Source: Octopus bimaculoides
Lineage: Eukaryota
Length of the DNA stretch: 61,672 bases
Assembly (NCBI RefSeq): GCF_001194135.2
Contig: NC_068990.1
Location: 9,047,814 to 9,109,485 of the forward strand
Direction of reading: 5' to 3'
Part shown: positions 24,943 through 50,352 of the stretch, in pieces
Position numbering within the stretch: position 1 is the first letter of the stretch
How the letters are laid out: each line of letters starts with the position of its first letter
Position numbers and translations under genes: made by a program
The notes under the pieces: generated by a model
Seen by the model: the letters and a program-made list of their open reading frames with translations, nothing else
What the model was told of the DNA's origin: nothing
Database searches by the model: none

Positions 24943-24975
<33 letters not shown>

Positions 24976-27900
24976 GCGTGTGTGTGTGTGTGTGTGTTTG
25001 TCCCCCCCCCCCAACATCGCTTGACAACCGATGGTGGTGTGTTTACGTCCCCGTAACTTAGCAGTTCGGCAAAAGAGACCGATAAAATAAGTATTAGGCT
25101 TACAAAGAATTAGTCTTGAAATATAAAGGGGGTCCGCAAGTCAAAAAGTTTGAAAACCCCTGGTCTAAACAATGAAGATGAGAGGAGTAAATGGTTTAGA
25201 TTAATGAAGCAGTGAAACAGAAAACAAATGCCTTAGAAAGAAATTATGTTTGTACACTCTGTAATGTCTGATAGAAAATTTTAAAGAAGACTTGGCTTTC
25301 ATGACTTGCTTGACAATGCAGGCTAACGAAATGGTTAGAATTAGCATTGAACTCTGTGAGGTACTTGATATATAAGTGTCTTCCAAGGCTCTGATGTTGT
25401 TCTGTTTGTTTTAGTCTTAAAATGACAAGATTTCCACAGAATGTTGGTTTTTACCAACAACTTGGTTCTCATTGCAGAAACTACTGAATGGCTTCTGTCA
25501 ATCAACAATGATCTAAAACTTGTCAAAGTTTTATATACTTTAAATCCAATATACCATCCATTCCAAATAGGAGCTGCAGTTCTTATCAGACAACCATTAC
25601 ATCTATCAACAGAAGATATTTGTCAGATTTCCATTACATGAATACCAAAATACAGATGTTACTTTTTTTCCTTATCTTCTCATAAATTCCAATTTCAATA
25701 TTGTCTTTCTTTCACATACAACTCATCATTTCAAGAGTGCTCTCCTGAAAAACTTATATTCTTAATGTTGTCAGAACTCTAGATCTAAGAGATATTTAAG
25801 TTGTGTACAATTGTTTGCAATATATATTGTCGGAATATATTTGCCTATGTAATTCACTCATTCATTTTACATTGATCTTTTTTTCCATGCTTGCATGTGT
25901 TAAACTGACACATATTATAGAGACATTATTTCTCAGCTTAATGCTCTTTCTGTCATTAACCCTTGCCTGATTTTCGAGTAAGGGTGTTTTCATTCCATTT
26001 GTGTATGAAAAGTATTGAGCTACCAAATGATTTATTGATTGGGAAATGTCAACAGACATCACCATTCACAGCTCAGCAATTTTCATGAAAGGCACAGAAT
26101 ATTATCATTCACGCAAAGACACATGCATATATATATATATATGTATATATATATATGTTTATATATATATGTATATATATATATATATATANNNNNNNNN
26201 NNNNNNNNNNNNNNNNNNNNNNNNNNNNNNNNNNNNNNNNNNNNNNNNNNNNNNNNNNNNNNNNNNNNNNNNNNNNNNNNNNNNNNNNNNNNNNNNNNNN
26301 NNNNNNNNNNNNNNNNNNNNNNNNNNNNNNNNNNNNNNNNNNNNNNNNNNNNNNNNNNNNNNNNNNNNNNNNNNNNNNNNNNNNNNNNNNNNNNNNNNNN
26401 NNNNNNNNNNNNNNNNNNNNNNNNNNNNNNNNNNNNNNNNNNNNNNNNNNNNNNNNNNNNNNNNNNNNNNNNNNNNNNNNNNNNNNGCTTGAAGCAGTCC
26501 TGAATCTCTTGCGAAATGATGCTTTTAACACCTCTGTTGTTTTTTTTTCTTCACTTCTTCCACATCTGCAAAACGTTTTCCTCTAAGGACTCTTTTCATT
26601 TGGGGGAAACAAAAAAATGTTACAGGGTGCATGATCGGATGAATAGGGTGAGTGGGTAAGTGGAGTCGTGCCATTTTTGGTCAGAAACTGTTTCACACTC
26701 AAGGCAGTGTGCACAGGAACATTGTCGTGATGAAACCATCACTCTCCACTTTGCCACAGGTCAGAGTGTTTTCATCTCACCACGTCTTGCAAACGCTTCA
26801 GAACTGCCAAGTAAAATAGCTGGTTAACAGTTTGACCAAGAGGGACAAATTCTATGTAGACAATTCCTTTCACATCGATGAAACAAACCAGTATCGCCTT
26901 GACATGCTTTTTGGGGGCATGGTGACATTGAATGCTTCCTTTGACATCATTCAATGACACCAGTCAGTAGACTTATGCCTGAGGGTCACATCAAGTGGCT
27001 TCTAGTGGCAGAAGCCTGAACTACAATGGGCTTGTCTCACAGAAAACGTTTCCGGTTATTTTGTGGTACCCCCCTCGTATTGATAGATAGTCATGGATCA
27101 ACTTCTACGCAGATTAATCTTTTACTTTATTGAACCTCTAATGATCTCAGTCTGATAATCAGTTCAAAGATAAGCAATATTGATAACAAATCCCAGCATT
27201 ACAGTAACAATCAAGCTTCCTTCCAAAGATGTATATCTTGCTCAAGTAACATAGGTATTGATCATTTTCAATAATGCATTCTGCATATGAGATCATTCCA
27301 CTGAAAAGAAATCGCATCTCAGCAGGCAAAGCTTGTTTACCTAAAATAGCAATACTAGTAGGGGTAAGTCTAAGTCAAACATGAAACACTTAGAATAAAT
27401 TAATAGGAATTAATTCATCTGCAAAGACATTAAGTTTCAAAAGTTAAATGGCAAAAGCAAGAAAAAGGAAAGAAACTGCAGTTAATGTAAGAACAGGCAT
27501 TGCTCAGACAGCAGCAAGTGTCTCCAGATATATCCTCCATATGAAGAATTGTCACAATCAAATTAGTTTAATTTCATCATCATTAGTGTTAGGAAGGGCC
27601 TCCAGCCATAGAAACCAAGCCAAAACAAACTATGGAACCTGGTGTGGCCCCTGGCCTTGCCAATTCCTGTCAAGTCGTCCAACCCATGCCAACATAGAAA
27701 ACAGACATTAAATATCGATGATGCAGAGGATGAGGATCATCATCATCATCATTTTATTGTCCACTTTTCCATGTTCACGTGGGTTGGATGGAATTTGCTG
27801 AAGATACCCTTCCTATCACTAATCCTCACCTCTTTCCAAGCAAGGTAATATTTCCCCCAAGACCAAACATGTTTTCACAGAAAATTGGAGATAATGGACT

Positions 27901-28923
27901 GCTTATATGACATTCATGCAACATCAAGGCAAGGGCACACATACGCACACACACAAAACAGGCTTCTTTCAGTTTCTAACGAATCCCACAAAACTTAGAT
28001 CATCCCAGGGCTATAGTAAAAGACACTTGCCCAAGGTGCCACACAGGGGAGAAAACTTGTCAATCACATTACCATGTCTATACCTTATATATAGTCATTG
28101 AAGTATAACTCTAGAGAATGCACCAAGTCTATTATTATTCTGGGGAGTCTAACTCTGTTTGTGTCCTTGAGCTCAGTGCTGTTAGTTGGTTCAAACTCAT
28201 TTATGATTGTCGTTAAACCAGGTAACAATATTTTTCTCAAGCTGTTTCCTTTTTATGTTTTATTCTTATGCCATTTCAGGTGAAAGTGCTGGAGGGAACT
28301 TAGCTGCTGCTGTTGCACTTCGACTAGCATCCGAAACTACACTTCCTCGTATTAAGAGTCAAATTCTTTTAAGTCCTTTGCTTCAAGCTTTTGATTTGTC
28401 CCTTCCTTCTTATTCTATGCAAAATTTGAGTATTAACTTAATGGACAGAAAATGGATAGCTTCTTATTGGTTGCTTTATGGTGAAGGAAATACTGAAAAC
28501 CTTGATAGTCTTTTAAATGGTAACCACATAAGCCCATCGTTAAAATCTTCAGAGTATGCAAAGTCCGTTTCAATGGACTTACTTCCAGAAGAATTGCGTA
28601 ATCAGCCCCGTGTCAGTGTCAACACAACAAAATATGATGAGAAATTTGCTATTCCATTTGAAAGACTTTTGCTTAACCCTTATTTTTGCCCCTTGTTTGG
28701 AAGAAATCTTAAAAATTCTCCCCCTGTGTATATGATATCATGTACATTTGATGTTGTACGTGATGAAAATTTCTTATATGTACGCAAACTAAAAGATGCT
28801 GGTGTGGAAGTCCAACATGACCATTATGAAGGTGCTGTTCATGGCTTACCAACAATTGAATATTTTGATATAAGTGACACAGTCATAAAGAAGCTTTCAG
28901 AGTATATTCAAAACACTATATAG
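7807..28923 (+). CDS. AADAC: Arylacetamide deacetylase / neutral cholesterol ester hydrolase 1-like gene (HSL-family carboxylesterase), 6 coding exons, 402 aa
   Basis: join(7807..7950,16673..16774,19466..19598,21765..21828,23439..23560,28280..28923) = 1209 nt. All introns are GT-AG with matching phases (0,0,1,2,1). The product has an N-terminal anchor plus YEPLP..EPWK, FHPGGW, DYRLAPEH.FP, GESAGGNLA, FDVVRDE and HG motifs. Exact orthology (AADAC vs NCEH1) is not resolved. Confidence 0.92.
7994..8458. repeat. Long inverted repeat / fold-back (~226-nt arms, 16-nt loop)
   Basis: 7994-8219 is the reverse complement of 8236-8458 at roughly 90% identity by eye. Loop 8220-8235. Confidence 0.92.
11870..12720 (-). 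mobile_element. R4/NeSL-like non-LTR retrotransposon RT fragment
   Basis: Minus-strand IFQGDSL (12521-12542) and FMDDLKL (12429-12449) correspond to RT motifs 4 and 5 of the R4/Dong/NeSL type. Heavily frameshifted. Confidence 0.62.
15908..16062 (+). repeat. Dispersed repeat family 3 ((CAT)n-TTTAACGTCCGCTTTCCATGCTAGCATGGGTTGGACG...GGATGCCCTTCCTAACGCCAACC), representative copy
   Basis: Related copies at ~5770, 8720-8915, 19655, 22070, 22615, 27585 and 35300 in both orientations. Confidence 0.8.
16673..16774 (+). CDS. AADAC: AADAC-like coding exon 2 (not in ORF track)
   Basis: Acceptor ttctttttctcttaccacAG, 34 open codons CSGFEMTGYTSYLNCTRQFSNAYIRNIQSNDKIS, donor GTAAGA. Phase 0/0 fills the expected gap between exons 1 and 3. 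Confidence 0.82.
16905..17109. mobile_element. TTAA-flanked piggyBac-type MITE (second copy at about 40282-40479)
   Basis: TTAA|CACTTTTGGTACCA ... TGGTAACAAAAGGG|TTAA. The subterminal sequence CAACAGAAATATGGTAACAAAAGG recurs at about 40455-40478. Confidence 0.7.
17700..18250 (-). mobile_element. CR1/L2-type LINE 3' fragment
   Basis: ORF 17709-18143: LYSLKCRRERYAI..., RYCNSLGFRGLQLFNILQKDLRDL..., KLDLLLSSVSDEP, typical of the post-RT C-terminus of CR1-group LINEs. Confidence 0.75.
19100..19357 (+). mobile_element. Mariner 3'-end fragment
   Basis: Translates as LTENDFQARFQK*QEC*DWSIAVQGDYSEGD (mariner C-terminus), followed by TIR-like GGACTTTTTGATACCACCTCGTA. Confidence 0.6.
19466..19598 (+). 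CDS. AADAC: AADAC-like coding exon 3 (oxyanion-hole motif)
   Basis: gacAG|VVDENFSGVKVRIYYPAGVSEKDKTKLLPGILYFHPGGWTFGRM(G)|GTAAGT. Confidence 0.92.
19992..20854 (+). mobile_element. Internally deleted piggyBac element
   Basis: TTAA|CCCTTTCGTTACT ... AGTAACGAAAGGG|TTAA. The internal ORF 20369-20596 (ETNRY...DEIRAFFAINIIMGIRQLPRITNYWS) resembles a piggyBac/PGBD transposase. The element spans an N-gap. Confidence 0.88.
21765..21828 (+). CDS. AADAC: AADAC-like coding exon 4
   Basis: atAG|(G)VSHSLLERLTQETGAAFIDV(D)|GTGAGT, phase 1/2. Confidence 0.88.
23439..23560 (+). CDS. AADAC: AADAC-like coding exon 5
   Basis: tttAG|(D)YRLAPEHIFPVPFDDCLTATVHILRNGRVYGIDSSRIAVS(G)|GTGAGT, phase 2/1. Confidence 0.93.
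24788..25117 (+). mobile_element. Abundant SINE family 2 (CCAACCACATGGTTTCGGGTTCAGTCCCA..GTGGCACCTTGGGCAAG), representative copy
   Basis: Related copies or fragments at ~670-1420 (-), 4765, 13790-14160 (-), 16090 (-), 27950 (-) and 37016-37262 (+). Confidence 0.82.
26487..26990 (-). mobile_element. Mariner transposase fragment (catalytic domain), left end in gap
   Basis: Minus-strand translation gives ILVCFIDVKGIVYIEFVPLGQTVNQLFYLAVLKRL, then HHDNVPVHTALSVKQFL and HSPYSSDHAPCNIFLFPQMK. Confidence 0.85.
28280..28923 (+). CDS. AADAC: AADAC-like terminal exon A (complete Ser-Asp-His triad)
   Basis: ccatttcAG|(G)ESAGGNLAAAV...FDVVRDE...AVHGL...NTI*. The Ser codon AGT is at 28285-28287. AATAAA occurs at 29798 and 29819. 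Confidence 0.95.
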
Positions 28924-30110
28924 TGCTTACCTTGTTCCCATTTTGAAATTTACCAAAATATTCCCTCCCACCTCTGCCACTAATTTCTACCAATTTTATG
29001 TGGTTTATTTATTTGGTTTTGCATATTTTCTTTTTGGTTTAATATATAATGAAGATAACTTTATTATTTTTTTGTCTTTACCATTTTATAATCCTTGATG
29101 ACTAGTGTGGTGGTTTATAACAACCTAACAACATTCATTCATAATCCTTAGTCAAATCAAGAACAGTTATGGCATCAAGAAATATTATTTTCAATTCCAT
29201 ACCATTTACCTCTTTTCTATATTTCATCACTACTGTTTCTCTTCTTCTAATCTTCCTAATCCGTTTTACTCAGATCTCTAGAACTCTATTTCTATGCCCA
29301 TGTTTGCCCCAATCCCCAGCAACTCAGATTCTTAGAACACATTTACCAACATTTTGTTTATTGTTCTTGTGTTCTTAGGACTTAAGTTCTCAAGCAAGAA
29401 TCAGTTTGCAGCAGAAGCCTTCTTTTGTTTCTCTTACATCACTAATCTCTTTGTAAAAGGTGAATCATTACAATATTTTCATTTTCTTTTCTTTTTTTTT
29501 TTTTACCGAAAATTCCAAGCTTCTTAGTTAGCACCAAATACAAATAACGCTGCACATATCAAGAAAATAGCTACACACAACTAAATCTTTCTTCCTTGCA
29601 AATAACAAACATAAAACAAACATACTCATTTATAAATGTTGGACTTCACATTCTATAGCAACCTTTTGTGAAAACTAGAAAATATTTCACAAAGGCTGGC
29701 TTTTGCTTTTTCGGAGTTAGAACTAACAACTGCTAGTTACATACAGAGAACAAATACATCATCTACTAAAATACAGTCGACAAACCTTTTACAGTACAAT
29801 AAACATAGGTACATATATAATAAATCTTTGACTGTATTGAATGAAAGAGTTAAAAAAGTAACAATATCTGCCTCATAAACAAAACTTTTCCCTTCAAAAC
29901 ACATCGCTCCTAGTAACCCTCTCCTGCTCAAGTTTTCTCTTTTATGTTTAACCTTCTTGATACCAACCTGTCTGAGACCGCCCTTAGATTTATGATACAA
30001 ATTCTATTTTAAAATGATCTAAATTAAAACCTGCCATCAAAATTTCACATTAGTTTATGTCCTAAATACCAGCTTAATAATGACAAAGTTGTTTCAATAA
30101 GTTTTTCATT

Positions 30111-30494
30111 GTGGAGGCGCAATGGTCCAGTGGTTAGGGCAGCGGACTCGCGGTCATAGGATCGCGGTTTCGATTCCCAGATCGGGCGTTGTGAGTGTTT
30201 ATTGAGCGAAAACACCTAAAGCTCCACAAGGCTCCGGCAGGGGATGGTGGCGAGCCCTGATGTACTCTTTCACCACAACTTTCTCTCACTCTTACTTCCT
30301 GTTTCTGTTGTTCTTGTAATTCAAAGGGTCAGCCTTGTCACACTGTGTCACGCTGAATATCCCCAAGAACTACGTTAAGGGTACACGTGTCTGTGGAGTG
30401 CTCAGCCACTTGCACGCTAATTTCACGAGCAGGCTGTTCTGTTGATCGGATCAACTGAAACCCTCGACGTCGTATGCGACGGAGTGCCAACAAC
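30111..30494 (+). mobile_element. Full-length tRNA-derived SINE with target-site duplication
   Basis: A-box TGGTCCAGTGGTTAGG, B-box GGTTTCGATTCCC, and a 12-bp TSD AAGTTTTTCATT at 30099-30110 and 30495-30506. Confidence 0.88.
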
Positions 30495-31014
30495 AAGTTT
30501 TTCATTATTCTATAACTTAGCTGAAACAAAAGCACTTATATTTAAGTATCATTATGGTAACAAAATGGCTAAGTTGCATGAGGTTTTGGTAAATACTAAC
30601 TAATTTCTGTGCTCTAATTCAAGCATCCATCTTGCTTTTTCATCATCCTTGATGACTTCAATATTCACAACTCCTCTTGACTCTCTCAATCCACACACTC
30701 TGGCATAGAGACTGAAGTTTGCACCATCATGAAGTTTCTTTACCTACCTCTGTCTTATACACTGCTTCTCCAAACATTTCAATTTTTTTCTTCCAAACCC
30801 AGACTTTTGTTGGATTTAATCTGATACAGTTTCAAAACACATTTGAGAAACACTGAGTTGTTGTTCAGTCCTGATCAAGCAGACCTATGGCCAAAGTGTG
30901 CCACTATGACCGTCCCATTTTATTGCTGTGGTTAGAGAAGAATTTTGCTGCTACTTCTAACATGTCGAAGCTCTCTTGTAACTCACGAAATCATTGGGTT
31001 ATTTTTTATACCAG

Positions 31015-31055
<41 letters not shown>

Positions 31056-31629
31056 NNNNNNNNNNNNNNNNNNNNNNNNNNNNNNNNNNNNNNNNNNNNN
31101 NNNNNNNNNNNNNNNNNNNNNNNNNNNNNNNNNNNNNNNNNNNNNNNNNNNNNNNNNNNNNNNNNNNNNNNNNNNNNNNNNNNNNNNNNNNNNNNNNNNN
31201 NNNNNNNNNNNNNNNNNNNNNNNNNNNNNNNNNNNNNNNNNNNNNNNNNNNNNNNNNNNNNNNNNNNNNNNNNNNNNNNNNNNNNNNNNNNNNNNNNNNN
31301 NNNNNNNNNNNNNNNNNNNNNNNNNNNNNNNNNNNNNNNNNNNNNNNNNNNNNNNNNNNNNNNNNNNNNNNNNNNNNNNNNNNNNNNNNNNNNNNNNNNN
31401 NNNNNNNNNNNNNNNNNNNNNNNNNNNNNNNNNNNNNNNNNNNNNNNNNNNNNNNNNNNNNNNNNNNNNNNNNNNNNNNNNNNNNNNNNNNNNNNNNNNN
31501 NNNNNNNNNNNNNNNNNNNNNNNNNNNNNNNNNNNNNNNNNNNNNNNNNNNNNNNNNNNNNNNNNNNNNNNNNNNNNNNNNNNNNNNNNNNNNNNNNNNN
31601 NNNNNNNNNNNNNNNNNNNNNNNNNNNNA
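31056..31629. other. Assembly gap (others at 976-1260, 3385-3394, 15583-15907, 20027-20304, 26192-26486)
   Basis: Runs of N. Confidence 0.99.
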
Positions 31630-31956
31630 AAGCATGTGATTTTTAAAAAAACTTTTGATTTTATTGCTTGTATTTCATTAACCTTACTATTTAATTCCAT
31701 TTTGCCATCTTCTTTCTATCTAATAATGCATAACAAAAAATAAATTGTAAATAAAACATCTAAAAATGAAATGATTTTGTGTATTAATTATGATAAGAAA
31801 AATAATTGATTCTGCATTAAATCTGTTATGAAATATATTTTTTTTCTTCCTGTTTAACTTCATTTTGATGTATTTAGCAGAAGATTTTTTTTTTCTTTTT
31901 CTTTTTTTTTTTTAATTTTTTACAAAATTACTTGTCCTAAAATGCATATTAATGTA

Positions 31957-33107
31957 CAAGGGTTGGCTGAAAAGTTCATAGGCTGACTGAGACGCTCTAA
32001 TAAAATGTGACCAAATGAGGTTTAGGTTTATTTTCAACATGTCCCCCTTGCAGTCCACACAATACTTCCATCAGTGTTGCAGTGCTTGGATCTCATTGGT
32101 AAAGAAGCTTTCATCCTGTTAGTTAAAAAGGATAAGGTGTGAGGGTGGAAGAAAGCAAGTTGCAGTCAGAATTACAGGACAAGTGTTTTTTCATGTTGAG
32201 GAACAGATGATAGTCAGATGGGGCCAAATCAGAACAGAGTGGATGATCAACCAGTTGTCAGTTTTCCTAGGTATTTGGTCTTAATAGCCCTTTGTAACTG
32301 CCCTAAGAAGTTGGCATAATGCTCTCCATTGATGGTGTGGCTTTGTGAAAATAGTCAATAAATGGAATGCTTTTTGCATTCAAAACCTGTGGCCATTATT
32401 TTCACTGCAGATGATACAACCATGACCATCTTTGGGGCAGGTGCAGAGGGATGTTTTCACTGCTTGGATTGTCTCTTTGTCTCTGGATCAAAGTGATGTG
32501 GCCAACACTCATTTGGACTTAGGAGATGTTCAAGGAAACCAGCTGGATCTGGCTCAAGCAATATCAGATTTTGGCATGATCTGAGCAGCCTTTTGTGCTT
32601 TTGATCAAGTGTCAGAAGTCATGGCACCCACTGAGCAGAAACCTTCATTATGCCAAGTTCATTGTGCCAATTATTCCCAAGTCTCTCACAGCATATGCTA
32701 ATAGCATTGACTATTTGATTTATTGTCAATGTTTTCCTTAGTGGTGGCAGTTGCAGGTCATCTTCAAGACTCCCCCTTCCCTTCTTAAATTCAGCTACCC
32801 ACTTTTGCACTATTGATAAAACTGGAGCATTATTCCCTAATATAGCAAGCATATCAGCATGAATGCCCTTGGAAGCTAAACTGTTTTTCTGTAGGTACTT
32901 GATAACACTTCGATGCCAAATTTTGTACATTTTCAAGAGAAGTTGCTACTAGTTACTTTTGAAGTCTTTGAACAGTGACATATCAGTTCACTTGGAAAGA
33001 AACAATGCAGTTGTTAACAAGGAGAGTTGAAATTGATGCGTGCAAGATTTCAAAGCTCAAGCATCACTCCTTAATAGTCAGCTTATGAACTTTTCAACTC
33101 ATCCTCA
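31957..33107 (-). mobile_element. Decayed mariner transposon
   Basis: Imperfect TIRs CAAGGGTTGGCTGAAAAGTTCATAGGCTGAC and GTCAGCTTATGAACTTTTCAACTCATCCTCA with TA flanks. ORF 32619-32936 is a mariner N-terminal HTH (HRSVIKYL..., WVAEFKKGRGSLED, VSAQWVP). Confidence 0.85.
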
Positions 33108-36009
33108 TATAGCCAATAATAAACAATACAATTATTTAGCTTCTGCTGTTATGTATAATCTAATACACATTGTCAAATGTATATAAATGTCTTTTTTTTT
33201 TATGTCTCTATTGACAATTTAAAAAATGACATTCTTTTACATTTGTCTACTTGTATTACATTACACAGCACGAGGATACCTAAAAATCTGTATTGTTTAT
33301 CATTACTTATACCTTTCTACATATTTCAGAGTGTGCAACATAAATTGTTAAGTTCATCCTTAATGGATTAAACATTTTTTTGTCCTTAAAGGGAGGATTT
33401 TGTTTTAGGTTCCAATTCTTAGGCCAAGCAGCCTGCTGGTTAATATGAAGGTTCCAGTGTTTTATAATATTTATTTCTTCTTCATAATTTTTGCTCAATC
33501 ACAGCTGCCTGTGACTGCCCAGTAACAAGTGTATGTTCACAAAGAAAATAACAAAACACATCATTAATTGGTTAAACTCTGAACTTGAGCATGGACATTT
33601 CTAAAGCACTTTATAACAACAAAATACATGCATGGTTTATGTTCTTCTATTTGCATAGTGGTAAGTACTTTAAAACAAAAGGAAAATTCCAGCAACAAGC
33701 ATCTATAATTTGATTCCAGCCATTAACTACACCTATTCTTCTCTTCACATTATCACTAATATCTTTGGGAAAGGCATGAACATCACAGCATTTTTCCCCC
33801 CTTTGCATACTTTAGGAAAAGCATAACAGGAAATAAGTAATTTTCTCCAATTCAAATGCTGTAATACAATAACAAGATTATATCTGGAAAAATTTGTTTC
33901 TTAAAAGTAAAATCATAAGGCACACATTGTACATAGCAATATTATCTTATCTAGCTATTATTTTTATTTCAGATGCTAGTTTTGTTTACTTCTGTTTTAT
34001 TTGTTGGTTTTTCAGCATTTTCTCAATGTCAATCATTGTTTATATAAATGTCACTGAAACGAGTTTGTAGAATAATGAATGAATTTTTTTTTTAAAGGTA
34101 GAAACTTGTTCTAAGAATAGAATATTTGTTAGGAATATAACCTTAGATTATCCATCACTGAATCCTTTGGAGATCACATTCTTAAAGTATAGAACTAATG
34201 TACAAATGTCTTTACTCTCTGGTGTGGATTCACCATTTTGTGCATATTTATTTTTTTCTTATTGGTCTCTCTCTTTGTATGCCTACTCTTAGGTCAAATA
34301 TATAGATATATTCTTTGATCAATGATTTAATTTGCAACTGGAACAATATAGATGTAAACAAGCCCCCATTTGTTTTCTTTTATTTTAATTGGTAAAAGTT
34401 ACAAAGTGATTCAAGAGCCGAGAGCTTTGTGTGTTAGCACTAAACCTAGACCCACATACAAGTATGTGTGGGTTTTTTTGTTAATGATTTCAGAAACTTT
34501 GTAGAGGCGATCATCAGACTCTATTTACATAATAGGAAAGTTTTTTTTAAATTGCTGGGTTTTTAGTAAAACGAGGTGTAAAATTTGATAGCTAAATTTT
34601 ATTCGTCTGCTCTTTATTTACAATAATCTAATAAGCAATATATTTATGGGGAATATTCAAGATGGAATTTATAGAACTAATATATGTAGGTTGGAACACA
34701 GCATAGTAGATTTTTTTACTTTTCTATGATTATTCTTCTATGCAATTCTTGTTCATGGTGATGGCAAATGCCATATAGCTTTATTTGAGTAAGCCCATAT
34801 CCACATGTGAAAGCCCGATTTCCCTCTGAAATTTATATAATTCATCTAAAACCATATGATCCTTGTTTTCATTGTGTCACCTCTGGAAATTACTTTATTG
34901 GGCTTTCTATTGGTAGAAAAGAATTACATACTCAAGTCTTGTTATATTGAGGATATCAGCTTGTGGGCAATTACATAAGATCAGTGGTTCTCAGTCAAGG
35001 TCTATATGGCCCATGGGAGTCTGTATAAGATTTTGTTGTTAAAATTTATCTGCAATAAATCAGTTATATTTCTACAACAGACAAAATATTGTAACAATTT
35101 TTTTAAACATTGAATGGCTATGAGGGCCATCTGAGTAAAATAGGAATCAAAGGGCTCCATAGGTAAAACAAATGGTTGAGAAACACTATGCTGTATACAT
35201 CTGAAATATTCTTGTGTATCATGAGAGTAATCAATATAGAGGTTGATAATTATTCTATACACAACTAAGTAAAAGTTTTAAAATGTTGGTGTTTTCAGCA
35301 TCATCTTCCTTTAATATGTGTTTCTTATGCTGGCATGGGTTGGCTGGTTTAACAGGAACTAGTATGTCAGAAGACAGCCAAACTCTTCTGTTTGCTTTGG
35401 CATGGTTTCTATGGTTGGATGCCTTTCCTAACACCAACCATTAAAAGAATATACTGCAAAACCAGCTGGTGAAAGCATTATAATATAAAGTATACAGTAA
35501 ATCATGTTCTACTTAGTAAGATTAAAAGTAATCAGTAGATATAAAACTAGATGGATACAGTAATGTTGATTATGAGTATTAATGAGAGAGTTGAGGGAAA
35601 ATACCTCAATAGACTATTCCACATTTTTAATGCAAATATTGCAAGGTCTCACAAATTAATTGAAAAACTTTAACTTGCTATGCAATTAGTAGAAAATGAA
35701 AAACTCTCTTTAGTTGTGCTTAAAGGTTAAAAACAACTACAGTAAGAAGTATTACTTGAAAACTTTTAGGAACTATAGACATTGCAATGTAGTCATGTTT
35801 AATATATTATATAGTTTTACTGCAGAATCTAGATGTACTAAAAATTCTTGGCACAATGGTTTATGGTTAGGATTTCTGGCTCGTTAACTGTCATCACATT
35901 CCACTAAACTCACAGTTCAAACAAGTTATAGCTTACAGTTACATAAAAGATACTACATTACATATTGTTAGTTTGACAACTGTTAAAATTTCTGTTTGCA
36001 TACAATATA

Positions 36010-36225
36010 TGAGGGGGGTGCTAAAAAGTTCCTGGCTTTGAGTAAAAGAAAATACAAAGGAATCAGTTAAGTACGATTTTATTCGACGCATTCCCCTCTC
36101 TGATTCACGTACTTATTGCACTGATCCTTCAGTTTACCTAAGCCCTGTAAAAGAACTCAGAAGGTTGAGCCTCTAACCAGGCCTTTTGTGATACCCTTAA
36201 AGCCAGGAATTTTTCAGCACCTGCT
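36010..36225. mobile_element. Mariner-derived MITE
   Basis: Inverted ends GGTGCTAAAAAGTTCCTGGCTTT and AAAGCCAGGAATTTTTCAGCACC with TA flanks. Confidence 0.7.
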
Positions 36226-36299
36226 TAGGAACTTGAATTGACCAATTTATATTTAAACATTCTTTTGATGGAATAAATATCTATAGTGTCTGAGAAGCA

Positions 36300-36790
36300 G
36301 AATGTTTCTCCCTTAGCTGTAATTAAGAGACCCTGTTTAGTCACCAAACTTTCTAATTCCATATGCTCCAAAGACACAAGGAAAAGTCATGGCTGAATCT
36401 TGCAGTGAGGTCATGTCACTATAAAGCAAACATTTTAAGTTGTACAGCTGACCATCAGCCAAAGTTATTGCAGTTGTATCCATTCTCCTTAAAAGGATCT
36501 GAAGGAAAGTGCATGTGAGAAAAAAGGAAGTGGTTTGAAGACGTACTTAAAGGAAGTTTGAAAAACTGAGCACCAGTGAATAACCAACACAAGTGGAGAT
36601 GGACCTCAACAATACTACTTTGACCTGGTATGAATCAGATATCTCACCAATAAAGGCAAACATAGAAAGCAGCACAAAGTGACCAACACTGCATCTCTTC
36701 TCCCACGAGACACCATGGCTGGTCTGCTATTAAACTTGTGGGTCCTGCATTAGCCTACATAGTCAAAAGCAGGTTCATTGAAATTAAAGG
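36300..36790 (+). mobile_element. Possible RTE-type LINE 3' remnant
   Basis: KRKWFEDVLKGSLK resembles the RTE KKRFKDTLKASLK segment. Weak. Confidence 0.35.
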
Positions 36791-38662
36791 TAGCGACTGT
36801 CATTTTCAACTGAAGAATTGCTAACGAAAATTGATCAGAGGTTTATAAACCTAATTGAGTGTTGTGAGATGTAAATCTGTGTGAACATACTTGATCCAAT
36901 CAATAAAGAATCCATCATCCCATTAGTGTTTCTCATAACAGTGAGACTAATATTGGAGTGGTAGACATTTGTTAGCCAACAATAAACTCTCTGTCATTTT
37001 GGAATGTTACTGAAATCAAAGCCTTGTGAATAGATTTGGTAGATGGAAACTGAAAGAAGCCCATCGTATATATGTATGTTTGTCCCCACAACATCGCTTG
37101 ACAACCGATGGTGATGTGTTTACGTCCCTGTAACTTAGTGGTTCGGCAAAAGAGACCGATAGAATAAGTACTAGGCATCCAAAGAATAAGTCTTGGGGTT
37201 GATTTGCTCGACTAAAGGCAGTGCTCCAGTATTGCCGCAGTCAAATGACTGAAACAAGTAAAAGAGTATCGTTCAATGCAGCAAGCTGGCTGAATTGTTA
37301 GCATGCCAAGCAAAAAATTAGCATTATTTCGTCTGCTTTTACATTCTGAGTTCAAATTCCACCAAGGTTGACTTTGCCTTTCATCCTTCCAGAGTAGATA
37401 AAATCAGTGCCTGTTGAGCACTGGGGGTTGATGTAATTGATTTACTCAGTCCCATGAAATTGCTGGCCCTGTACCAAAATTTAAAACCAATATATGGGGA
37501 TTTCAAGCTAGAAGCATCATGTGTCCCTCTTTAAGAGTTTTTGTATTGACTCTTTTTGTCACAGTTTTAAGAGCGGATATGCATATATTTCTGAATAACT
37601 GCAAGGTTTCCTTGTGAAAGATATAAATACTGTGCTCGTTTGCAAATGATTAAGCTTCTGAAAGAGCTAATTCTATCTCTGCTCCAGAATTCTCAACTTT
37701 TTATAACTACTCATCACTGCCATGTATCTCTTATACAGCTAGACACCTGCTCCTGTATCCCTGTTGTTTGGCCTCACAGTACCTAGCACAAAGTCAACTT
37801 TATCAATACTGCAGTGATTTTTCAATCACCATTTTCCTGTATCCATAGCAATTCTGTCTTAGTATGCAGTTGGCCATGGGTACATGTTACTTTCAAAAAA
37901 CCCAAAGAGACAGAAATGTGGATTCAGCATTCTCATCACCCCTGCTTAATGATTTTCGTCTGCTACTGATGTGTTTGTATTTTTAAACAGAGAACGTCCA
38001 TAAGTGACATTGTCTCCTGACGAATACCACAGTTAATTTGCCTTTTGTGCTGTATTTTCATCAAGTATGATACACTGATAGCTGTTTTAATCTTATACCA
38101 ATTCTGTTGTACATAACGGATTTTTATTCAGCCAGACAGCAAGTTGCAACACCAGTAATTTTTCAATTCTTGTTTCCCTACATAAGTATATAAGTATGTT
38201 GCACAAATGGCTGTATGTGTTTGTTTACTGTAAGGTACATTAATTTACCAGTTCTGTTTACATTACAAGCCAGAGATCGCCTATTTTCCTTTAATGACCT
38301 TTGATAACTGATTTATCAGTGTTTTTTCAACTGCTAAATTCTTGTTTTTTTTATTTTTATTTACTGATAAATTTTCCATTTGAAGATGGTAGCGTTGCTA
38401 TTACCCACTTGCAGGAAGTAAATAAAATCGAGAAATTCGATGTAAAAAAAATAATAATTGTCTGATGGAATTAAAGAACACTAATAAATCACTAAAACAT
38501 TTTCAACGTCAAAGTATTAAAATTTTGACAAAATATCCACCACTCGATGGAATTCACAAGATTAAGCGATCTGAACATAGTGTGTTGATTATTTGTCCTG
38601 GCTTAAATACAAGGTGATAACTTTTGCAGTACATATGCATATATATATATAAATATATATAT

Positions 38663-39078
38663 CAAAATTAGCAACAGGATATCAAGAAGTGATGCAGCAC
38701 AACCGTTTCAAGCAACTCCATTTAATTGAATAATGCAATTATTACATCAATTTAAATGCAGGGCTATCCTCAGCTGCATAGATAAATAAATAGAATTTTT
38801 AATCAGTCGGACACATTAATATAATTTTACTCGAATGCTTTAACTGAACAAGAAGATGGAAGAAATCGATGTTGCCACTAATGTAGCTAAGAATATACTA
38901 CACTTCCAAGAAATGTATGAAGTTTGTTGGGGTCATAGCTTGTGAAGGATTGTGGTTCATTTTTAATTTATTAGTCTTTTTATCAACTACTAAATCTAAT
39001 GATTACATTGTTCAATCAAAGGAAGTCGCTTGAAACGGTCGTACTGCATCACTTCTTGATATCCTGTTGCTTATTTTG
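38663..39078. mobile_element. MITE with ~50-bp terminal inverted repeats
   Basis: CAAAATTAGCAACAGGATATCAAGAAGTGATGCAGCACAACCGTTTCAAGC pairs with GCTTGAAACGGTCGTACTGCATCACTTCTTGATATCCTGTTGCTTATTTTG. Confidence 0.7.
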
Positions 39079-39163
39079 GAGTTGTACGGATAATAGCGCA
39101 CTGATTTGGTGTTTCAACTTAAGTACCTAATTCAACAGAATCTCAATTATTTCTTATTTATAA

Positions 39164-39196
<33 letters not shown>

Positions 39197-42100
39197 TACA
39201 CACACAAAGCTTCAGCAGTAAATGAATCGAACCAGACTCACGTAGTTGTGTAACAAACGTAACCACATAACCCTTACCTACACCTTTTATGTTCTGAATT
39301 CAAATACAAGCTGAGGTAGATAAAATAATTACAAGTCAAGTACTGAGGTCAATCTAACCGACTGTATCTGTCCTCGAAATTCATTGTATTGTACATAACC
39401 TAAAAATTGACGGCAGGCATCAAAGGGAATGTCTTAGTTTCCACGTGAAAATACAGAGAGATTTCGAGGTTTTTTTTTTTTTTTTTTTTTTTTTTAGATT
39501 ACGGTCTCACATAAATGTCTAGAAGCTTCTCCCTAAGTTTCAATCCGGAATTTCAACTTCAGGGTTCGTTTTGGTAGTGGCTAAATATTATGTCAATATG
39601 ATCCACGTTATATTAGATAATCTGTGCCTGCCTCTCTCTCTCTCTCTCTCTCTCTTCAAATCGAAGAAAGGAGATTATGCTGTCATCACCATCTTCATGA
39701 TTACAAACTACAATTTCGTGAACTCACAGGATACAACTATTTGCCTTTTATACACACACATGCACGTACGAACACACACAGACACAATAACAACAACAAC
39801 AACAGCCCTTTCAAGAAAATGGACGTTTCAATCTTTTGCTGTGTAAACCTACTGAGCCGTTATGTTCGATATTCACTCTTTGTAACAAACAAAGAAAAGC
39901 AATAAAATGTTTGATTGATGTATGACGACAAATCTCACTTCACTGTTCCTTCGTTCTCGCTTCTGAATGATCCTTAAAATTTTTCTACTTCGTTTCACTT
40001 TAGTCCTTTCATGTCGATAAAATAAAATATTTATTAAGATGATTTATATTGATGCAATGTATTCTAGATGATAATAGGATTATAAAAGAAGAGTATATTT
40101 GATAATTCCTTGCAAGTATTGCTTTTTAAGTTTTGTAAGATAAGAATTGAGAGCTTTCTGGACAGAGGAGTGGAGTGGGGTAGAGGTGTTAAATATTCGA
40201 TGAATCAATAAAATGGAAATGTAGTTTTAAATTTCAAACAATGAGCAAAAATGTTTGAAGACAATATCAAAAGAAATTTAATCCTTTTGATATCAACCCT
40301 CCTGAGATTGCTTCTAGTTCTTTGATACAAACTTCCTGTTTTAAAGCGTTCTAAATTAACATTTTCCTTAAAATTTCATGTTAAATTATGTTCCACTAAG
40401 TTAATGTATTGTATTCTTATTTTCGAAATAAATTGAATGACAGAGGGTGCATTTCAACAGAAATATGGTAACAAAAGGTTCAATCAACGTAAGAAACGAA
40501 ATGTCTTAAAACCATTCTTTATGTAGCCCAGAGAGCTACAACGATGACTGGTGTTGTGTTGTGTACAATTGATGATTTTGTAGTGTACATTTATTTTACA
40601 AGTTACAGTCAGTTGAATTTACTCTAATACGTGATTGATACATATTAAACGAGTCAGAGGAGATTCTACAAGGTTGATAGATTTTCTAGAAATAACAACC
40701 AAATCTCACAAGCCGTACATTTATCGTGTTAAAAGCCACAAAGACACTGGATAATGAAAAAAAAAAGGAAAGAAAAGGTGGGATGGTCAAAACTGGAACA
40801 CTTTGGCCATATGTCTCCTCATTTATGGTTGGCAAACATAATGAAAAAAAATTACTTTATCAATGCCACCAAGCGATATTGGATGGTAAAGTTGATCTTT
40901 GATAGTCTTTGAAGTTTCAATGTGTAGAGATTAAATAATGTCAACACTATCAATCCTCTTCCTCGGCCACACGAAATATTGTGCTTTTGAGTCAAAGAAG
41001 AATATACATTATCGTTATGCTAAAATGGTAGCCAAATCCAGTGATCTAGCGTAGTTTTTTCTAGTTTTTTTTGTTTTTTTGTTTTTTTTTGCCGAGTCTC
41101 TCATTCCACTATTGCAAACACAAGTGTATAAAAGTGGTTATCCTCTGTGGTCCGTACAGCCTGCACACCTCCACCCGACATCACTGGCCAAATCATCTAA
41201 TTTAAAAAGACGCGAGATTGAGGCTGAGTGCGTTTGATTCTAGGCCTCACAGGTCAAAGCTAACCTAGAGCAAAACATTTTGTATTTTGAGTCAAACTAG
41301 GGAGCCTCTACGTGTTTGCTTGGTCTGCTAGAAACAGTAACCAAATCTCCTTCAAGTCACACCGTAATATCGAAATAAAAGGAAAGAAACATTGGAAGAT
41401 ATATACTATGTCTGAAAAAAGACCGGGTAGTCATTGCCAAAATTCTTTTGGCCTTAGGTGTGCTAATGCTGACCTGATGCTGAATAATATCGATCATATC
41501 ATCTGTGTATGATATGATTAATGTGTGAACTTCACTTTGATCTTAGCCAAAAGGCCAAGAAGCGATTTTTGATGTATAAACTTGTTAAAAATGTTCAATA
41601 TAAACATATATTTAACAACAGGAATTGTACTATCTAACCAAACAGAATTATTTAGTTTTGTCTTTGTTCATTGGCAATAGGCATGATGTGTAGTTCTGGG
41701 TTCGATCTCACTGTATAGTACCTTGGATAAATATCATCTATCATGACTTCGAGTCATTCCAGCATTGTAAATAAAACTGGATAGAGAAACTGTGCGGAAG
41801 CCTACTAGACAGGATGTACTTGTGTCATAGTTTCTCTTCACTTTCCCGAACCAGTTTCGATGGCCCACCAGAAGTCATAGACACTGCCCTTCCCTCTTTG
41901 ACTTAGCTATAAAATCATATGGGGTCGGGCTCTGACATTCATGCTTGTAACATTCGATTATATAAGTAGCAGTAATATACTTGGGTAGATTCTAATGAGC
42001 AGATCCCTTTCCATTACGCGCGCGCGTGTGTAGTTTTTATGACGGTCTCTTCGAAGGCAGAATGGTGCTTCTCATTTGAAAAGTGGTTAATCCGTTACGA

Positions 42101-42225
42101 AACATAGTGGGATAATCTCCCAAATTTTTCTGTTTGCAAAAACAATAAGATGCCTTCAAATTTATTTTCTTTCCATAATGTGTTACAAGCTGTAGTTGAA
42201 CTACATTAAATTTATCTTAGATATA

Positions 42226-43431
42226 TCAGGCTGAGTAAAAAGTAAGCAACGTTTTGAAAAAAGGAAATTCATTACAATATATTTCAACAATGCGAAAATT
42301 TTATTCGCCAGAGCAAGTACCATTACAATCAACACATTTTTGCCAACGAGTTACAAGTTTGTTCTAGTAACATAAAAATTTGGAGTTCTGGAGCTGATGA
42401 ACTCTTTGATCGCAATTTCAGCATCGATTTGATTTTTGAACTCCTTCTCTCGCAGGAAATCAAACTGCTTGAAAAAGTGGTAGTCGGTAGGAGAAAGGTC
42501 TGGGGGAGAACTTCGTAGCCAAGTTTCCTCAACTTCTGGAGTGCCATTAGTGAAATGTGTGGTCGAGCATTGTCATGAAGAATGATTGGCCCTCTTCTGT
42601 TGACCATTCTGGGACGGAGGAGTAGCAGTTTTTCTTCATTTTGGCAATTTCATGACAATATGTTTCTGCAGTAATGGTTTTTCCGGGTTTTAAGAAGTTA
42701 TGGTGGATGAGTCCAGCAGTATCCCACCAAAGAGTTACCATAACCTTCTTTTTGAAAAGCTCGGGTTTAGGGAAGGTTTTCGGTGCTTCATTTTGGTCCA
42801 ACCACTGCAAAGAACGTTTTTTTTTTTTTTCCTTTTATTATTATTGTACAGAATCCACTTTTCATCGCAAGTTACAATACGGTCGAGAAATGGATCGGTC
42901 TGGTTACGGAGAAGAAGCTACAGATTTCGTGTCTGCGCATTCAAATCGTATGATACCCATTTGTCGAGCTCTTTTGATTTTCTGATCGCAGGCAGTTTTC
43001 TGGCTAACCTGAAGTTCTTTTGCCAGTTCTCGAGAGGATCTTTCTCAATGACGGTCTTTAATTGACCATCATCGATGACAGATGGGCGTCCACTACGCTC
43101 ACAATCTTCAAGGCTCAGGTTTCCACTGCGAAACCATTTAGACCATTTTTGAACTGACCATTCACTGGTCATTTCTTCACCAAACGTTCTGTTGATATCG
43201 CGAGCAGTTTCAGCTGGGGTTTTTTTTTTAAAGTTGAATAGCAAAATTGCTCGAATATCGCGATTTGGCTGTTCCATTTCAGATGTTTATAACGACGGTG
43301 AAGGGCAAGTCGATATCTGTGTTATCAGACAATTGCAAAAAAAGAATGTTTTTAAAAAATTCAAAATTCTGCAAAATTCCGGTACATATTCTTCATAGTT
43401 CAAAACGTTGCTTACTTTTTACTCAACTTGA
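42226..43431 (-). mobile_element. Full-length decayed mariner (Tc1/mariner) transposon
   Basis: 33-bp TIRs TCAGGCTGAGTAAAAAGTAAGCAACGTTTTGAA and TTCAAAACGTTGCTTACTTTTTACTCAACTTGA (2 mismatches) with TA on both flanks. The transposase is frameshifted across 42918-43277 (HTH, RSGRP), 42547-42810 (KVMVTLWWD..G.IH..FL..G.TI) and 42329-42607 (LHDNARPH). Confidence 0.93.
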
Positions 43432-43470
43432 TATAATGTATTTCATTGTTTTTCTCTTCTTTTTATCCAG

Positions 43471-44117
43471 GTGATGAAGCTGGTGGAAACTTAGCTGCAG
43501 CAGTTTCTCTTAGGCTCGCAGTTGAGACTGCGTTTCCTACTCTAAGAGCTCAAATTCTTATAAGTCCGCCTCTTCAAGCATTTGACTTTCTCACTCCATC
43601 GATGCTGTTTCATGACAAAAGTGTTCCGTTTATAATGAGTCGAAGAATGATCACACAGAATTGGCTCAATTATTACCAAGGTCGCACTAAAAATATTGAT
43701 GAATTTTTGATCAATAACCACACAGCACCTCTTTTGAAAGAATCCGAAGTCTCCCAATTTGTGTCTGTTCGTCAACTACCTGAAAGGTACCAGAAGCAAC
43801 ATACACTTCAAACGTCAACTGACTTTGGTGACGAAAATATTTCTTATGATTTTGAGCCAGTTCTTTTAAACCCATACTTCTGCCCACTGTTGGCACAAGA
43901 TTTCAAAAAGATACCACAAGCATATATTATTTCGGTGGAATTCGATGTTCTAAGAGATGATAGCTTTCTGTTTGTTGAGAGATTGCGTCAATCTGGAGTG
44001 AAAGTATATCACGACCATTTTAACGAAGCCTTTCACGGGATATTAATGTGCGAACATTTTGAAATGAGAGATAAAATCATAGCTTCATTGGTCAGTTTTA
44101 TTAAAGGCAGCATTTAA
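43471..44117 (+). CDS. Duplicate AADAC-like terminal exon B, nucleophile Ser replaced by Glu (alternative last exon or remnant of a paralog)
   Basis: Strong acceptor tttttctcttctttttatccAG in the same phase as exon A. The 647-nt frame is open: (G)DEAGGNLAAAV...LLNPYFCPL...FDVLRDD...FHG...KGSI*. About 98/215 residues are identical to exon A by hand count. Confidence 0.85.
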
Positions 44118-45654
44118 TAGCAATTTTTCTCCATTAAACATTTAATCAATTGATTACACATAATCGTCCGTGCGTATGATTTACGTGTTTATTCGTGAGA
44201 GTGTGTGTATGCATGTACTGACAGCTAATCATTATTTTAAATCAGCAAAAGCACAATTTTTTTATAATTAAAAAAAAATACATGAATAACTATTGTTACT
44301 GTTTTTCATTTAGAGTTTGCATGCTTGGGCGAAATTGAACCACCAGCCAGGTGGTTTGAATCCTACCAGTTACACAGCATTTGGGCCTTGGTTAAGACAT
44401 TTGAATATCATCAACCAAGTCAATCAATTAAAATTTCACATGTAAACCGTGGTAGCACTTTATTATCGATGAGAAGTATCTTGGCTTTCAGTAACCATCA
44501 GAGGAAAACTATCTGAAATGGATATTTTTAACGGAGAACGTAGCCTCTTGTCTGCCAAATAGAACAAAAGTCTGAAATAGCACCATCCTTGTGATTTGCA
44601 AAAAGCTTTATTTACACATAAACTCACGAACGCGTGCGCACACGCATTCACGAATACAAATTATTCTTCCTATATAACTTTCCACATCTCAGCGTCAGCC
44701 TTATGAAACCTAGCCATCTCACATCTAACCTGCTCCGACCCATGAACACAGGCCGCGAGAACATCTCTAAAGTGGTCTTTATAATGTTGCCTCTTTCAGC
44801 AACACAAATACACAATCACTGCAATTATCAAACAAAAAATAGATATATAAATAATGTTACAATCACTCCTAAACACGAACAACTCGATACCCGAACCCTT
44901 GAACACTGGAGTATGTTTTCGGGGTGCGATTTCGTTTGATTATACACATGGGAAACGCAAAAGCAGGCGGCTACATGGCTTTGTGTTCATTGTTGAAAAT
45001 AACGATGTCTCTGCCAATTAGCTGAGCCGTAATCTCAAAACTGTGGCAGCCTATCAAACGAAATCGAACCCGCTAAAGCGTACTCGCAAGTTCAAAGGTT
45101 TAAGGTTGCTACAAATGTTAGGTTTATATGTTTGCATATCGCTCGTTCTTTACATATTGTTTGCTGTTTGTACGCACCCAATACGTACGGCTTATAGCTG
45201 GTCAAGGTGATGTGTAGTGTGACCATCTAATAACGATTCATATCAGAAGGCTGATTTGTACATATAATGTGCCAGTTGGAAAGGAGAGACACAACCGAGT
45301 AGAAGGTTTGGAGAACATTTATTCATATATTTACATGCTTCTGTGTGGGTTATATTTTTGCTGTTAACCATGGTGAGGTATCTCACGAACAGCGCTATGT
45401 TAGAACCTATGCAGTGTTGCTGGTGCTGTGTACGTTGAGATGTTGCTGACGACGTTGGTGAGAGACATGATGGTGGCGACGAAGATGGTGGTCGTTGTAA
45501 TGCTGTTGGACAGGTGTTGTCTGGTGTCGTCGCTGGAACTGGCTGTGTCGTGTGGTTGGTGGCTAGACCTTAAAAGGTCTGGAACCAAAGACCTCGAGAT
45601 AAGGAAAAGTTGAGTTTTTATTAGTAACAGTAAGCTCAAATTGGATTGTGAATA

Positions 45655-45740
45655 GACTGTCTCACGTGATCTTATTTAGGGACTTCGATTGGCTAGGTTG
45701 CATATTGGCGTGATAGAGTAAGGGACAAACCAATCAGAGT
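45655..45740. promoter_or_regulatory. CCAAT-box/E-box cluster (candidate promoter)
   Basis: CACGTG at 45663-45668, ATTGG at 45688 and 45704, CCAAT at 45730, in a locally CpG-rich segment. Confidence 0.4.
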
Positions 45741-46980: not shown

Positions 46981-47020
46981 CATTGAGCAACATTGAGCAG
47001 CATTGAGCAACATTGAGCAA
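46981..47020. repeat. 10-bp tandem repeat (CATTGAGCA[A/G]) x4
   Basis: Read directly from the sequence. Confidence 0.9.
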
Positions 47021-47827: not shown

Positions 47828-47874
<47 letters not shown>

Positions 47875-48569: not shown

Positions 48570-48621
<52 letters not shown>

Positions 48622-48951
48622 TACATACATACATACATACATACATACATACATACATAAATACATACATACATATCTTTTGAATTTGTTGATGGGAAAC
48701 GTTTTGAATAAGCAAATAAAGCTCTTATTCTATTATGCCAGCCACAGTCTAATGATGCTGACCATCCCAGGAATATGGACTGTCATCTTAAGAGACACGT
48801 AAACTGTGGAAACGCGCGTAGCGATGCTTCATATGTTCATAAATTCCATCCAAGGATTATTGTTATTATTATGACATACATACATACATACATATATACA
48901 TACATACATACATACATACATGCTTTGATGCATACATAAATACATACATAG

Positions 48952-50189: not shown

Positions 50190-50352
50190 TGCGATATACT
50201 GGTGTGCCACGAGACGTTGCTATGTGTGTTGCAGTGTAACTTGATTATAACTTTTTTCCCCATGCTTTTAGTTATATTTTCAGTTCAGGTGTGCCGCCGA
50301 ATTTTGAAAAGAATGTAAGAGTCCCACAAGTGAAAAAAGGTTGCGGAGCATT
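50190..50352. mobile_element. Dispersed hAT-like MITE segment, second copy at about 61270-61430
   Basis: Shared sequence GCTGCGATA.ACTGGTGTGCCACGA...TTCAGGTGTGCC...CAAGTGAAAAAAGGTTG.GGAGCA at both positions. Confidence 0.6.

Follow-up and report, generated by a model that had tools for sequence, protein, structure and literature searches.

The 61,672-nucleotide stretch of Octopus bimaculoides DNA analysed here (contig NC_068990.1 of assembly GCF_001194135.2, called the window below) carries on its plus strand a single gene of the HSL / AADAC family (AADAC/NCEH1-like, Pfam Abhydrolase_3) with two homologous last exons, A and B, and we consider it likely that this one gene gives rise to isoforms X2 and X1 by alternative choice between them. 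Exons 1–5 spliced to the proximal exon A encode 402 residues, with a serine in the nucleophile elbow, and the same five exons spliced to the distal exon B encode 403 residues, with a glutamate at the corresponding position. The two-isoform model is already present in the NCBI annotation, independently in two species, and is thus not new as a gene model. The window is AT-rich and contains six N runs, and the exon model was rebuilt from homology and splice signals (Table 1).

The shared part of the gene starts with an exon 1 that matches the N-terminus of AADAC in tblastn (E = 1e-5) and has the donor GTT/GTAAGT, and the resulting N-terminus is hydrophobic (LGVILAVITVLISYWLY) and AADAC-like, with a helix at residues 2–21 in the AlphaFold model. 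Exon 2 is the sole open segment listed between an AG and a GT with the required 102 nucleotides, and is borne out by the full product, which matches exactly, and by its orthologues in Octopus sinensis and Argonauta, where orthologues of exon 4 are present as well. Exon 5 ends in GCTGTTTCAG followed by gtgagt, which leaves one base (G) of a Gly codon and hence phase 1; the donor CAG/GTGAGT, conserved in O. sinensis and Argonauta, splits the first Gly codon of the nucleophile elbow. The codon can be completed in two ways, by exon A after the acceptor gccatttcag (reading G/GT GAA AGT GCT GGA GGG) or by exon B after the acceptor ttttatccag (reading G/GT GAT GAA GCT GGT GGA), so that two homologous adjacent exons, both with phase-1 acceptors, face the single donor of exon 5, as expected for alternative last exons. 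The two share 45% of about 213 aligned residues and contain no stops or frameshifts.

An earlier reading of the DNA made without database searches (the sequence-only reading) had described the phase-1 end of exon 5 at 23560, the phase-matched exons at 28280 and 43471 that encode the C-terminal half, their identity of about 45% with intact reading frames, and the two product lengths; all of these are borne out, and the products match RefSeq X2 and X1 exactly. It had also used the phase-matched acceptor as evidence for joint splicing, and this argument fails. A phase-1 intron in the first elbow Gly codon is found also in the AADAC-like loci L001, L002, L006 and L011, that is in all four others examined, and the phase match is no evidence that exon 5 is spliced to B, because any duplicate within the family would inherit this intron.

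The 403-residue product is identical to XP_014769880.1, XP_014769955.1, XP_014770034.1 and XP_014770105.1, named 'arylacetamide deacetylase isoform X1 [Octopus bimaculoides]', and the 402-residue product to XP_014770186.1, isoform X2 of the same species. A corresponding pair is annotated in O. sinensis, XP_029640652.1 (X1) and XP_029640655.1 (X2), and the gene table of its locus (L009) lists two products with one start, ending at exon A (402 residues) and at exon B (403 residues). Alternative variants are proposed by the NCBI pipeline from transcript or RNA-seq alignments. The annotated products of O. bimaculoides, O. sinensis and Argonauta hians join exons 1–5 to B, the A. hians protein being GAB1603097.1 ('isoform X1', 402 residues). 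The octopod proteins were reached via a fem-1-like open reading frame in the window, by exact look-up and by a search of representatives; protein searches with exons A and B peaked at 53% identity, although octopod orthologues were in the collection.

In the O. sinensis locus all splice sites are conserved and the concatenated exons translate exactly to the annotated proteins; its sole N run lies in the intron between exons 2 and 3, and the 19-kb interval between A and B is continuous. The region around fem-1 in the same species (L007) is syntenic with positions 43449–60705 of the window, and the 403-residue Abhydrolase_3 product there ends at the orthologue of exon B. The A. hians locus (L010) contains no N and packs exons 1–5, A and B, in this order, into 12.8 kb; acceptors and donors are conserved, and the concatenation translates exactly to the annotated protein. 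No esterase exon was found within 10 kb of the A. hians fem-1 locus (L008); the esterase gene lies on another contig, and fem-1 synteny is therefore not conserved there. At the locus of the closest non-octopod relative (L001, protein P0001, elbow GDSAGG) an exon 5 homologue is located 1.4 kb upstream of the last exon, no second last exon is present within 10 kb downstream, and there is no synteny with the window. One transcription unit with two C-terminal halves, as the sequence-only reading had proposed, is thus supported by the annotation in two octopuses and by the gap-free loci.

The same reading had reported no second copy of exons 1–5, and this was confirmed by two kinds of search. With the gene's own exons, the full-length relative P0009 and human AADAC (used purely as a probe), tblastn picks up one copy each of exons 1, 3 and 5 and no second copy of exons 1–5 in the whole window, with no credible match to the N-terminal half in 28.9–43.5 kb, in 44.1–61.7 kb or upstream. 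A profile hidden Markov model built from 94 N-terminal halves and run on the six-frame translation of the window finds only exon 5 (2.5e-14), exon 3 (4.6e-11) and exon 4, its best match inside 28.9–43.5 kb being at E = 8. L002, a more distant homologue with a last exon 38–40% identical, served as positive control for the exon queries, which pick up its exons at E = 2e-7, 5e-5 and 5e-13; a 45%-identical copy of the N-terminal half would therefore have shown up.

Exon B might also be part of a complete second gene whose exons 1–5 are hidden in the assembly gap at 31056–31628 or were lost by mis-scaffolding. The gap matters because gene A and exon B are on different contigs, joined by scaffolding alone, and gap sizes are unreliable: a run of 295 N in intron 5 (26192–26486, outside the coding sequence) has about 2.5 kb as its counterpart in O. 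sinensis (L009 31919–34413), and is either an under-sized gap or an indel. The gap between A and B starts directly after a (TA)n run and is crossed by no reading frame; against a hidden gene, its flanks are colinear with O. sinensis, and the counterpart there (L009 39038–40107, 1,070 bp) consists of a TA/TG microsatellite and a repeat like a short interspersed element, with no esterase homology. No second N-terminal half is present in the gap-free O. sinensis interval or in the A. hians locus, where A and B are 5.4 kb apart, so that hidden upstream exons for B, which the sequence-only reading had named as part of what would speak against it, are lacking in both, and the annotated products of three species point the same way. 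On these comparative data a complete second gene is extremely unlikely. We infer that B is joined to exons 1–5, as no other arrangement would account for its constraint, since a half-domain cannot fold alone, no other N-terminal half exists in the three genomes, and the exon is constrained.

Both terminal exons are under purifying selection, and B is at least as constrained as A. The ratio of nonsynonymous to synonymous substitution rates (dN/dS) of exon A is 0.145 against O. sinensis (p = 4e-8 against neutrality) and 0.157 against Argonauta (72% amino acid identity); for exon B the ratio against O. sinensis is 0.174 (p = 2e-6 from 20 synonymous and 14 nonsynonymous differences, no indels) and 0.119 against Argonauta (81% amino acid identity, dS about 1.0), and that of the N-terminal half is 0.23 and 0.12 respectively. 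In the comparison with Argonauta exon B is the best-conserved part of the gene. The depth of the Octopus/Argonauta split was gauged by dS, which is 0.16 for the octopus pair and about 1.0–1.4 between Octopus and Argonauta. Between A and B the synonymous sites are saturated (proportion of differences 0.75 at synonymous and 0.37 at nonsynonymous sites), and the duplication is therefore old; orthologues of each exon in Argonauta show that A and B were already separate before the split. The earlier suggestion of an old duplication kept under selection is accordingly upheld, and the dN/dS check it had called for on exon B gave values far from 1. In a neighbour-joining tree of last exons the octopod A clade and the octopod B clade each receive 100%, and A and B are sisters at 60–80%. 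A closer relation of exon B than of exon A to the outgroups, seen in raw bit scores and dN branch lengths, was rejected, as the trimmed distances are 1.37 and 1.38.

These values bear on the idea that exon B was left behind when a tandem gene copy lost its 5′ exons, and is now a relic without transcription or function. The duplication of the C-terminal exon alone, a transposon remnant just upstream of exon B, and a phase match that any duplicate would carry over would all fit such a relic; the dN/dS values of 0.17 and 0.12, however, with no indel beyond one codon at dS 0.16 and about 1.0, do not, and the same layout with intact reading frame and acceptor is found in Argonauta, where a relic could not have persisted for so long. 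A relic is thus extremely unlikely. The remnant itself, of mariner/Mos1 type, shows HTH_48 (1.2e-12) and Transposase_1 (1.8e-23) in broken reading frames, and is intronic filler that forms no part of the gene product. Another degenerate mariner/Mos1 remnant is located in the interval between A and B, at 32619–32936 on the minus strand.

Some points weigh against a gene that switches between an esterase and a serine-less form. The XP records are computational models, and a transcript-derived full-length copy was found for neither isoform, each exact protein occurring on one contig, of the genome. Two public models connect exon B differently: UniRef100 A0A0L8IHX4 (253 residues, UniProt) joins it to an exon at 42851–42949 (plus strand) that is antisense to the mariner remnant and has a phase-1 GT donor, and the O. 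vulgaris protein CAI9729225.1 (689 residues) strings together exon A, a piece of its 3′ untranslated region (29379–29458 of the window, plus strand, with an AG acceptor and an AAG/GTGAAT donor) and exon B. Furthermore, both isoforms share the oxyanion motif HPGG, so X2 too may be no typical esterase, and the Glu at the nucleophile position of X1 might still support some chemistry.

With these splice boundaries the two public models would suggest that most expression of exon B starts at a transposon-derived first exon of its own or comes by read-through from A, with no junction to exon 5. A C-terminal half that lacks strands one to five and the oxyanion loop is no domain, however, which conflicts with the strong selection over the whole exon, and the transposon-derived exon is only 72% identical in O. 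sinensis, with a 6-residue indel; for the read-through, the frame of the link piece is broken in O. bimaculoides by a 1-nt difference, and the O. vulgaris model spans 112 kb with an unrelated N-terminus. We regard such an expression of exon B as very unlikely. Both older models of the locus are probably wrong, that of 253 residues probably being a prediction artefact, although 42851–42949 could mark a minor transposon-driven start, and the link piece may be a genuine non-coding exon or an artefact.

With alternative last exons, the large last coding exon would have been tandemly duplicated before the Octopus/Argonauta split. Exons 1–5 should supply the membrane anchor, the oxyanion loop and the strands with which the core sheet begins, and the donor at 23560 would be spliced either to exon A or to exon B some 20 kb downstream, skipping A together with its poly(A) sites. 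The outcome would be two full-length single-domain alpha/beta-hydrolases with the same N-terminal and different C-terminal halves, and regulation could operate through competition between proximal splicing and polyadenylation and distal splicing. Mutually exclusive use of A and B in vivo appears very likely. The two AATAAA hexamers, whose positions the sequence-only reading had given correctly, are candidate poly(A) signals of the proximal terminal exon, and the ATTAAA at 44133, with further ones at 44267 and 44427, are candidates for the distal one; poly(A)-type hexamers are frequent in AT-rich DNA. From hexamers after both exons it is plausible that last-exon choice would be coupled to alternative polyadenylation.

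Both isoforms belong to Pfam PF07859 (Abhydrolase_3), with 180.9 bits for the one containing A and 164.3 bits for the one containing B, against a gathering score of 25. The best solved relatives are esterases of the HSL family, with EST2 (1EVQ) at E = 4e-34. When X1 is aligned to EST2, whose triad we take to be Ser155, Asp252 and His282, the GDSAGG Ser is matched by E191, the DPLRD Asp by D347 and the HG His by H377. The catalytic Asp (DxLRD) and His (HG) are present in both isoforms and stand in invariant columns of a 108-sequence alignment, in which Ser fills at least 90% of its own column, exon B being an exception. Exon A encodes Ser191 (AGT, 28285–28287), Asp346 (28750–28752) and His376 (28840–28842), and exon B encodes Glu191 (GAA, 43476–43478) with Asp347 (43944–43946) and His377 (44034–44036) retained, so that the nucleophile elbow has the Ser of GxSxG in X2 (GESAG) and lacks it in X1 (GDEAG). 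AGT encodes the Ser in exon A and in P0001, P0121 and P0002, and the GAA of exon B differs from it at all three bases. Around Glu191 the flank of the elbow is intact over twelve residues (G-D-x-A-G-G-N-L-A-A-A-V), and O. sinensis, Argonauta and the O. vulgaris protein model all retain GDEAGG. The Ser-to-Glu replacement is neither a sequencing error nor recent decay. AlphaFold models X1 as a single confident domain (predicted local distance difference test 91.3, predicted template modelling score 0.92) with a strand-elbow-helix at 180–206, and the top structural matches of this model are HSL-family esterases. At the oxyanion loop Octopus has HPGG and Argonauta HYGG, with the last two Gly kept and the first replaced; L002 and Haliotis have HGGG.

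With its canonical Ser-Asp-His triad isoform X2 is probably an esterase, 'active esterase' being an assumption in view of the HPGG motif. Isoform X1 most likely keeps the fold and the pocket but is non-hydrolytic or altered in its chemistry, and the balance tilts towards a loss of esterase activity. It is a conserved homologue of active enzymes that lacks a key residue, as pseudoenzymes do, and the label would follow from the change of Ser to Glu. A less probable alternative is that X1 is catalytically alive, and that Glu191, Asp347 and His377 support another reaction, for instance with a carboxylate as nucleophile or general base in the manner of Asp-nucleophile alpha/beta-hydrolases, or a dehydratase-type activity. 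X1 retains the elbow, the Asp, the His and all invariant family columns save the Ser, exon B is under the tightest constraint in the gene, and relatives repeatedly have acidic or other non-Ser residues at the position (Lineus GDDAGG, Haliotis GDNAGG). An Asp at the elbow is used by haloalkane dehalogenases and epoxide hydrolases. Against a catalytic X1, no alpha/beta-hydrolase with a Glu nucleophile at the elbow is known to us, and the Gly of the GDGAGG relatives is no possible nucleophile, which suggests that a non-catalytic role is viable in the family.

A similar arrangement is found in abalone. The locus of Haliotis cracherodii (L011, JAJLRC010000007.1, 6001–21078) has one set of N-terminal exons and two last exons, and an H. 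rufescens 'isoform X2' of 406 residues falls into the same 90%-identity cluster as the distal H. cracherodii product. As in the octopus, the Haliotis 'arylacetamide deacetylase-like' X1/X2 pair has a proximal last exon with Ser, a distal one without it, and the phase-1 intron in the Gly codon. It differs in that the replacement is Asn and not Glu and that its two last exons are 33% identical. In the tree the two Haliotis exons group together weakly (37%), and not with octopod A or B, and the duplications in Haliotis and octopods were probably independent. Ser-less elbows are also seen among the representatives matched by exon B (GDGAGG, GDDAGG, GDNAGG, GDGSGG and others); the AADAC-like proteins P0198, P0278, P0261, P0250 and P0229 lack the Ser, as in Lineus longissimus with GDDAGG, Potamilus streckersoni with GDGAGG, and a 414-residue AADAC-like protein with GDGAGG that occurs in many Logan assemblies. 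Loss of the nucleophile Ser is recurrent in the AADAC-like family of lophotrochozoans, and members without it are not rare among animal AADAC-like proteins.

The closest annotated relatives are named 'arylacetamide deacetylase' or 'neutral cholesterol ester hydrolase 1-like'. Vertebrate AADAC and NCEH1 (AADACL1) share with the octopus protein a putative N-terminal signal anchor, Abhydrolase_3, GxSAGG, DxLRD and HG, and with the octopus gene a large last exon beginning at the elbow; the octopus gene differs by HPGG in place of HGGG and by a second terminal exon with Glu for Ser. To our knowledge no pair of Ser and non-Ser isoforms has been described for the vertebrate AADAC or NCEH1 genes. Neuroligins and other cholinesterase-like adhesion proteins, and the gibberellin receptor GID1 of the HSL/carboxylesterase family, are catalytically inactive alpha/beta-hydrolase homologues. 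Like X1, neuroligins and GID1 keep the fold and the pocket, have a triad residue replaced and are under purifying selection, presumably for binding and not for hydrolysis, but they are separate genes, whereas in the octopus the Ser-less and the Ser form are isoforms with half of the domain in common, between which RNA processing would choose.

The octopus case belongs to the known class of homologous alternative 3′ exons. C-terminal swaps make up 77 of 236 events of tandem-duplicated exon substitution in human and are the most over-represented class (PMC9741552), tropomyosin genes carry duplicated 3′ exons (PMC9741552, PMC8373072), and a catalytic residue discussed for KHK is conserved in both isoforms (PMC9741552). 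As in TPM1, Tm1 and lev-11 in those accounts, adjacent homologous exons would substitute for each other in the octopus, giving isoforms that differ in one homologous region, and the duplication is ancient with both copies under purifying selection. Compared with swaps of the TPM1 type so described, the octopus swap would exchange about half a catalytic domain (214 of 403 residues) with all three triad positions, and in contrast to the conserved KHK residue the nucleophile differs between the octopus copies.

Next to the esterase gene an intronless open reading frame of 592 residues with ankyrin repeats is located at 52760–54538 on the plus strand. It is 96% identical to the O. sinensis 'protein fem-1 homolog C-like' and 71% to the A. 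hians counterpart; the O. sinensis protein is annotated with 607 residues and an additional upstream coding exon, and an exact protein look-up of the 592-residue frame gave no match, the annotated product being longer.

Table 1. Positions of gene parts and other features in the window and at related loci.
Sequence	Feature	Position	Strand	Description
O. bimaculoides window	Exon 1	7807–7950	+	ATG and predicted N-terminal membrane anchor MILKNLGVILAVITVLISYWLYEPLPDS; common to both isoforms
O. bimaculoides window	Exon 2	16673–16774	+	102 nt, phase 0/0; common to both isoforms
O. bimaculoides window	Exon 3	19466–19598	+	Oxyanion-loop exon, HPGG codons 19568–19579
O. bimaculoides window	Exon 4	21765–21828	+	64 nt, phase 1 to 2; common to both isoforms
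O. bimaculoides window	Exon 5	23439–23560	+	DYRLAPEH...RIAVSG; shared donor for exons A and B
O. bimaculoides window	Exon A (proximal)	28280–28923	+	GESAGG, 402-aa isoform X2, stop TAG 28921–28923
O. bimaculoides window	AATAAA, two copies	29798 and 29819 (29798–29824)	+	About 0.9 kb past exon A stop; sequence match only
O. bimaculoides window	Assembly gap	31056–31628		573 N, non-coding interval between A and B, about 2.1 kb past exon A stop
O. bimaculoides window	Mariner/Mos1-type transposase remnant	42329–43277	-	Degenerate; ends about 190 bp upstream of exon B
O. bimaculoides window	Exon B (distal)	43471–44117	+	GDEAGG, 403-aa isoform X1, stop TAA 44115–44117
O. bimaculoides window	ATTAAA	44133–44138	+	16 nt past exon B stop; sequence match only
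O. sinensis L009	Exon 1	3001–3144
O. sinensis L009	Exon 2	15299–15400
O. sinensis L009	Exon 3	24871–25003
O. sinensis L009	Exon 4	27724–27787
O. sinensis L009	Exon 5	28170–28291
O. sinensis L009	Exon A	36469–37112
O. sinensis L009	Exon B	56152–56798
Argonauta L010	A-type exon	11133–11776		GESSGG
Argonauta L010	B-type exon	17199–17842		GDEAGG
H. cracherodii L011	Proximal last exon	15824–16516		GDSAGG, 413-aa product
H. cracherodii L011	Distal last exon	20419–21078		GDNAGG, 406 aa, 'isoform X2'

The value for annotation is modest, since both isoforms are already in RefSeq. The contrast between an enzyme and a Ser-less form is undescribed in the literature searched, where nothing relevant was found on a serine-less splice isoform of the AADAC-like family, on the gene or on the accessions. 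What stands out is that the choice of a last exon would swap half of one catalytic domain, nucleophile included; pairs of enzyme and pseudoenzyme at the isoform level with evolutionary support are rarely documented, and both octopus halves keep dN/dS at about 0.12–0.17 over a deep divergence. Tentatively, molluscan AADAC-like genes may use RNA processing as a regulated toggle between enzyme and non-enzyme, in which the product with the distal Ser-less half would keep the anchor and the pocket and be a lipid- or ester-binding protein that senses, sequesters or competes with the active isoform. If this is true, the toggle would have been kept since before the Octopus/Argonauta split and would have re-arisen in abalone, which would hint at a recurrent selective advantage.

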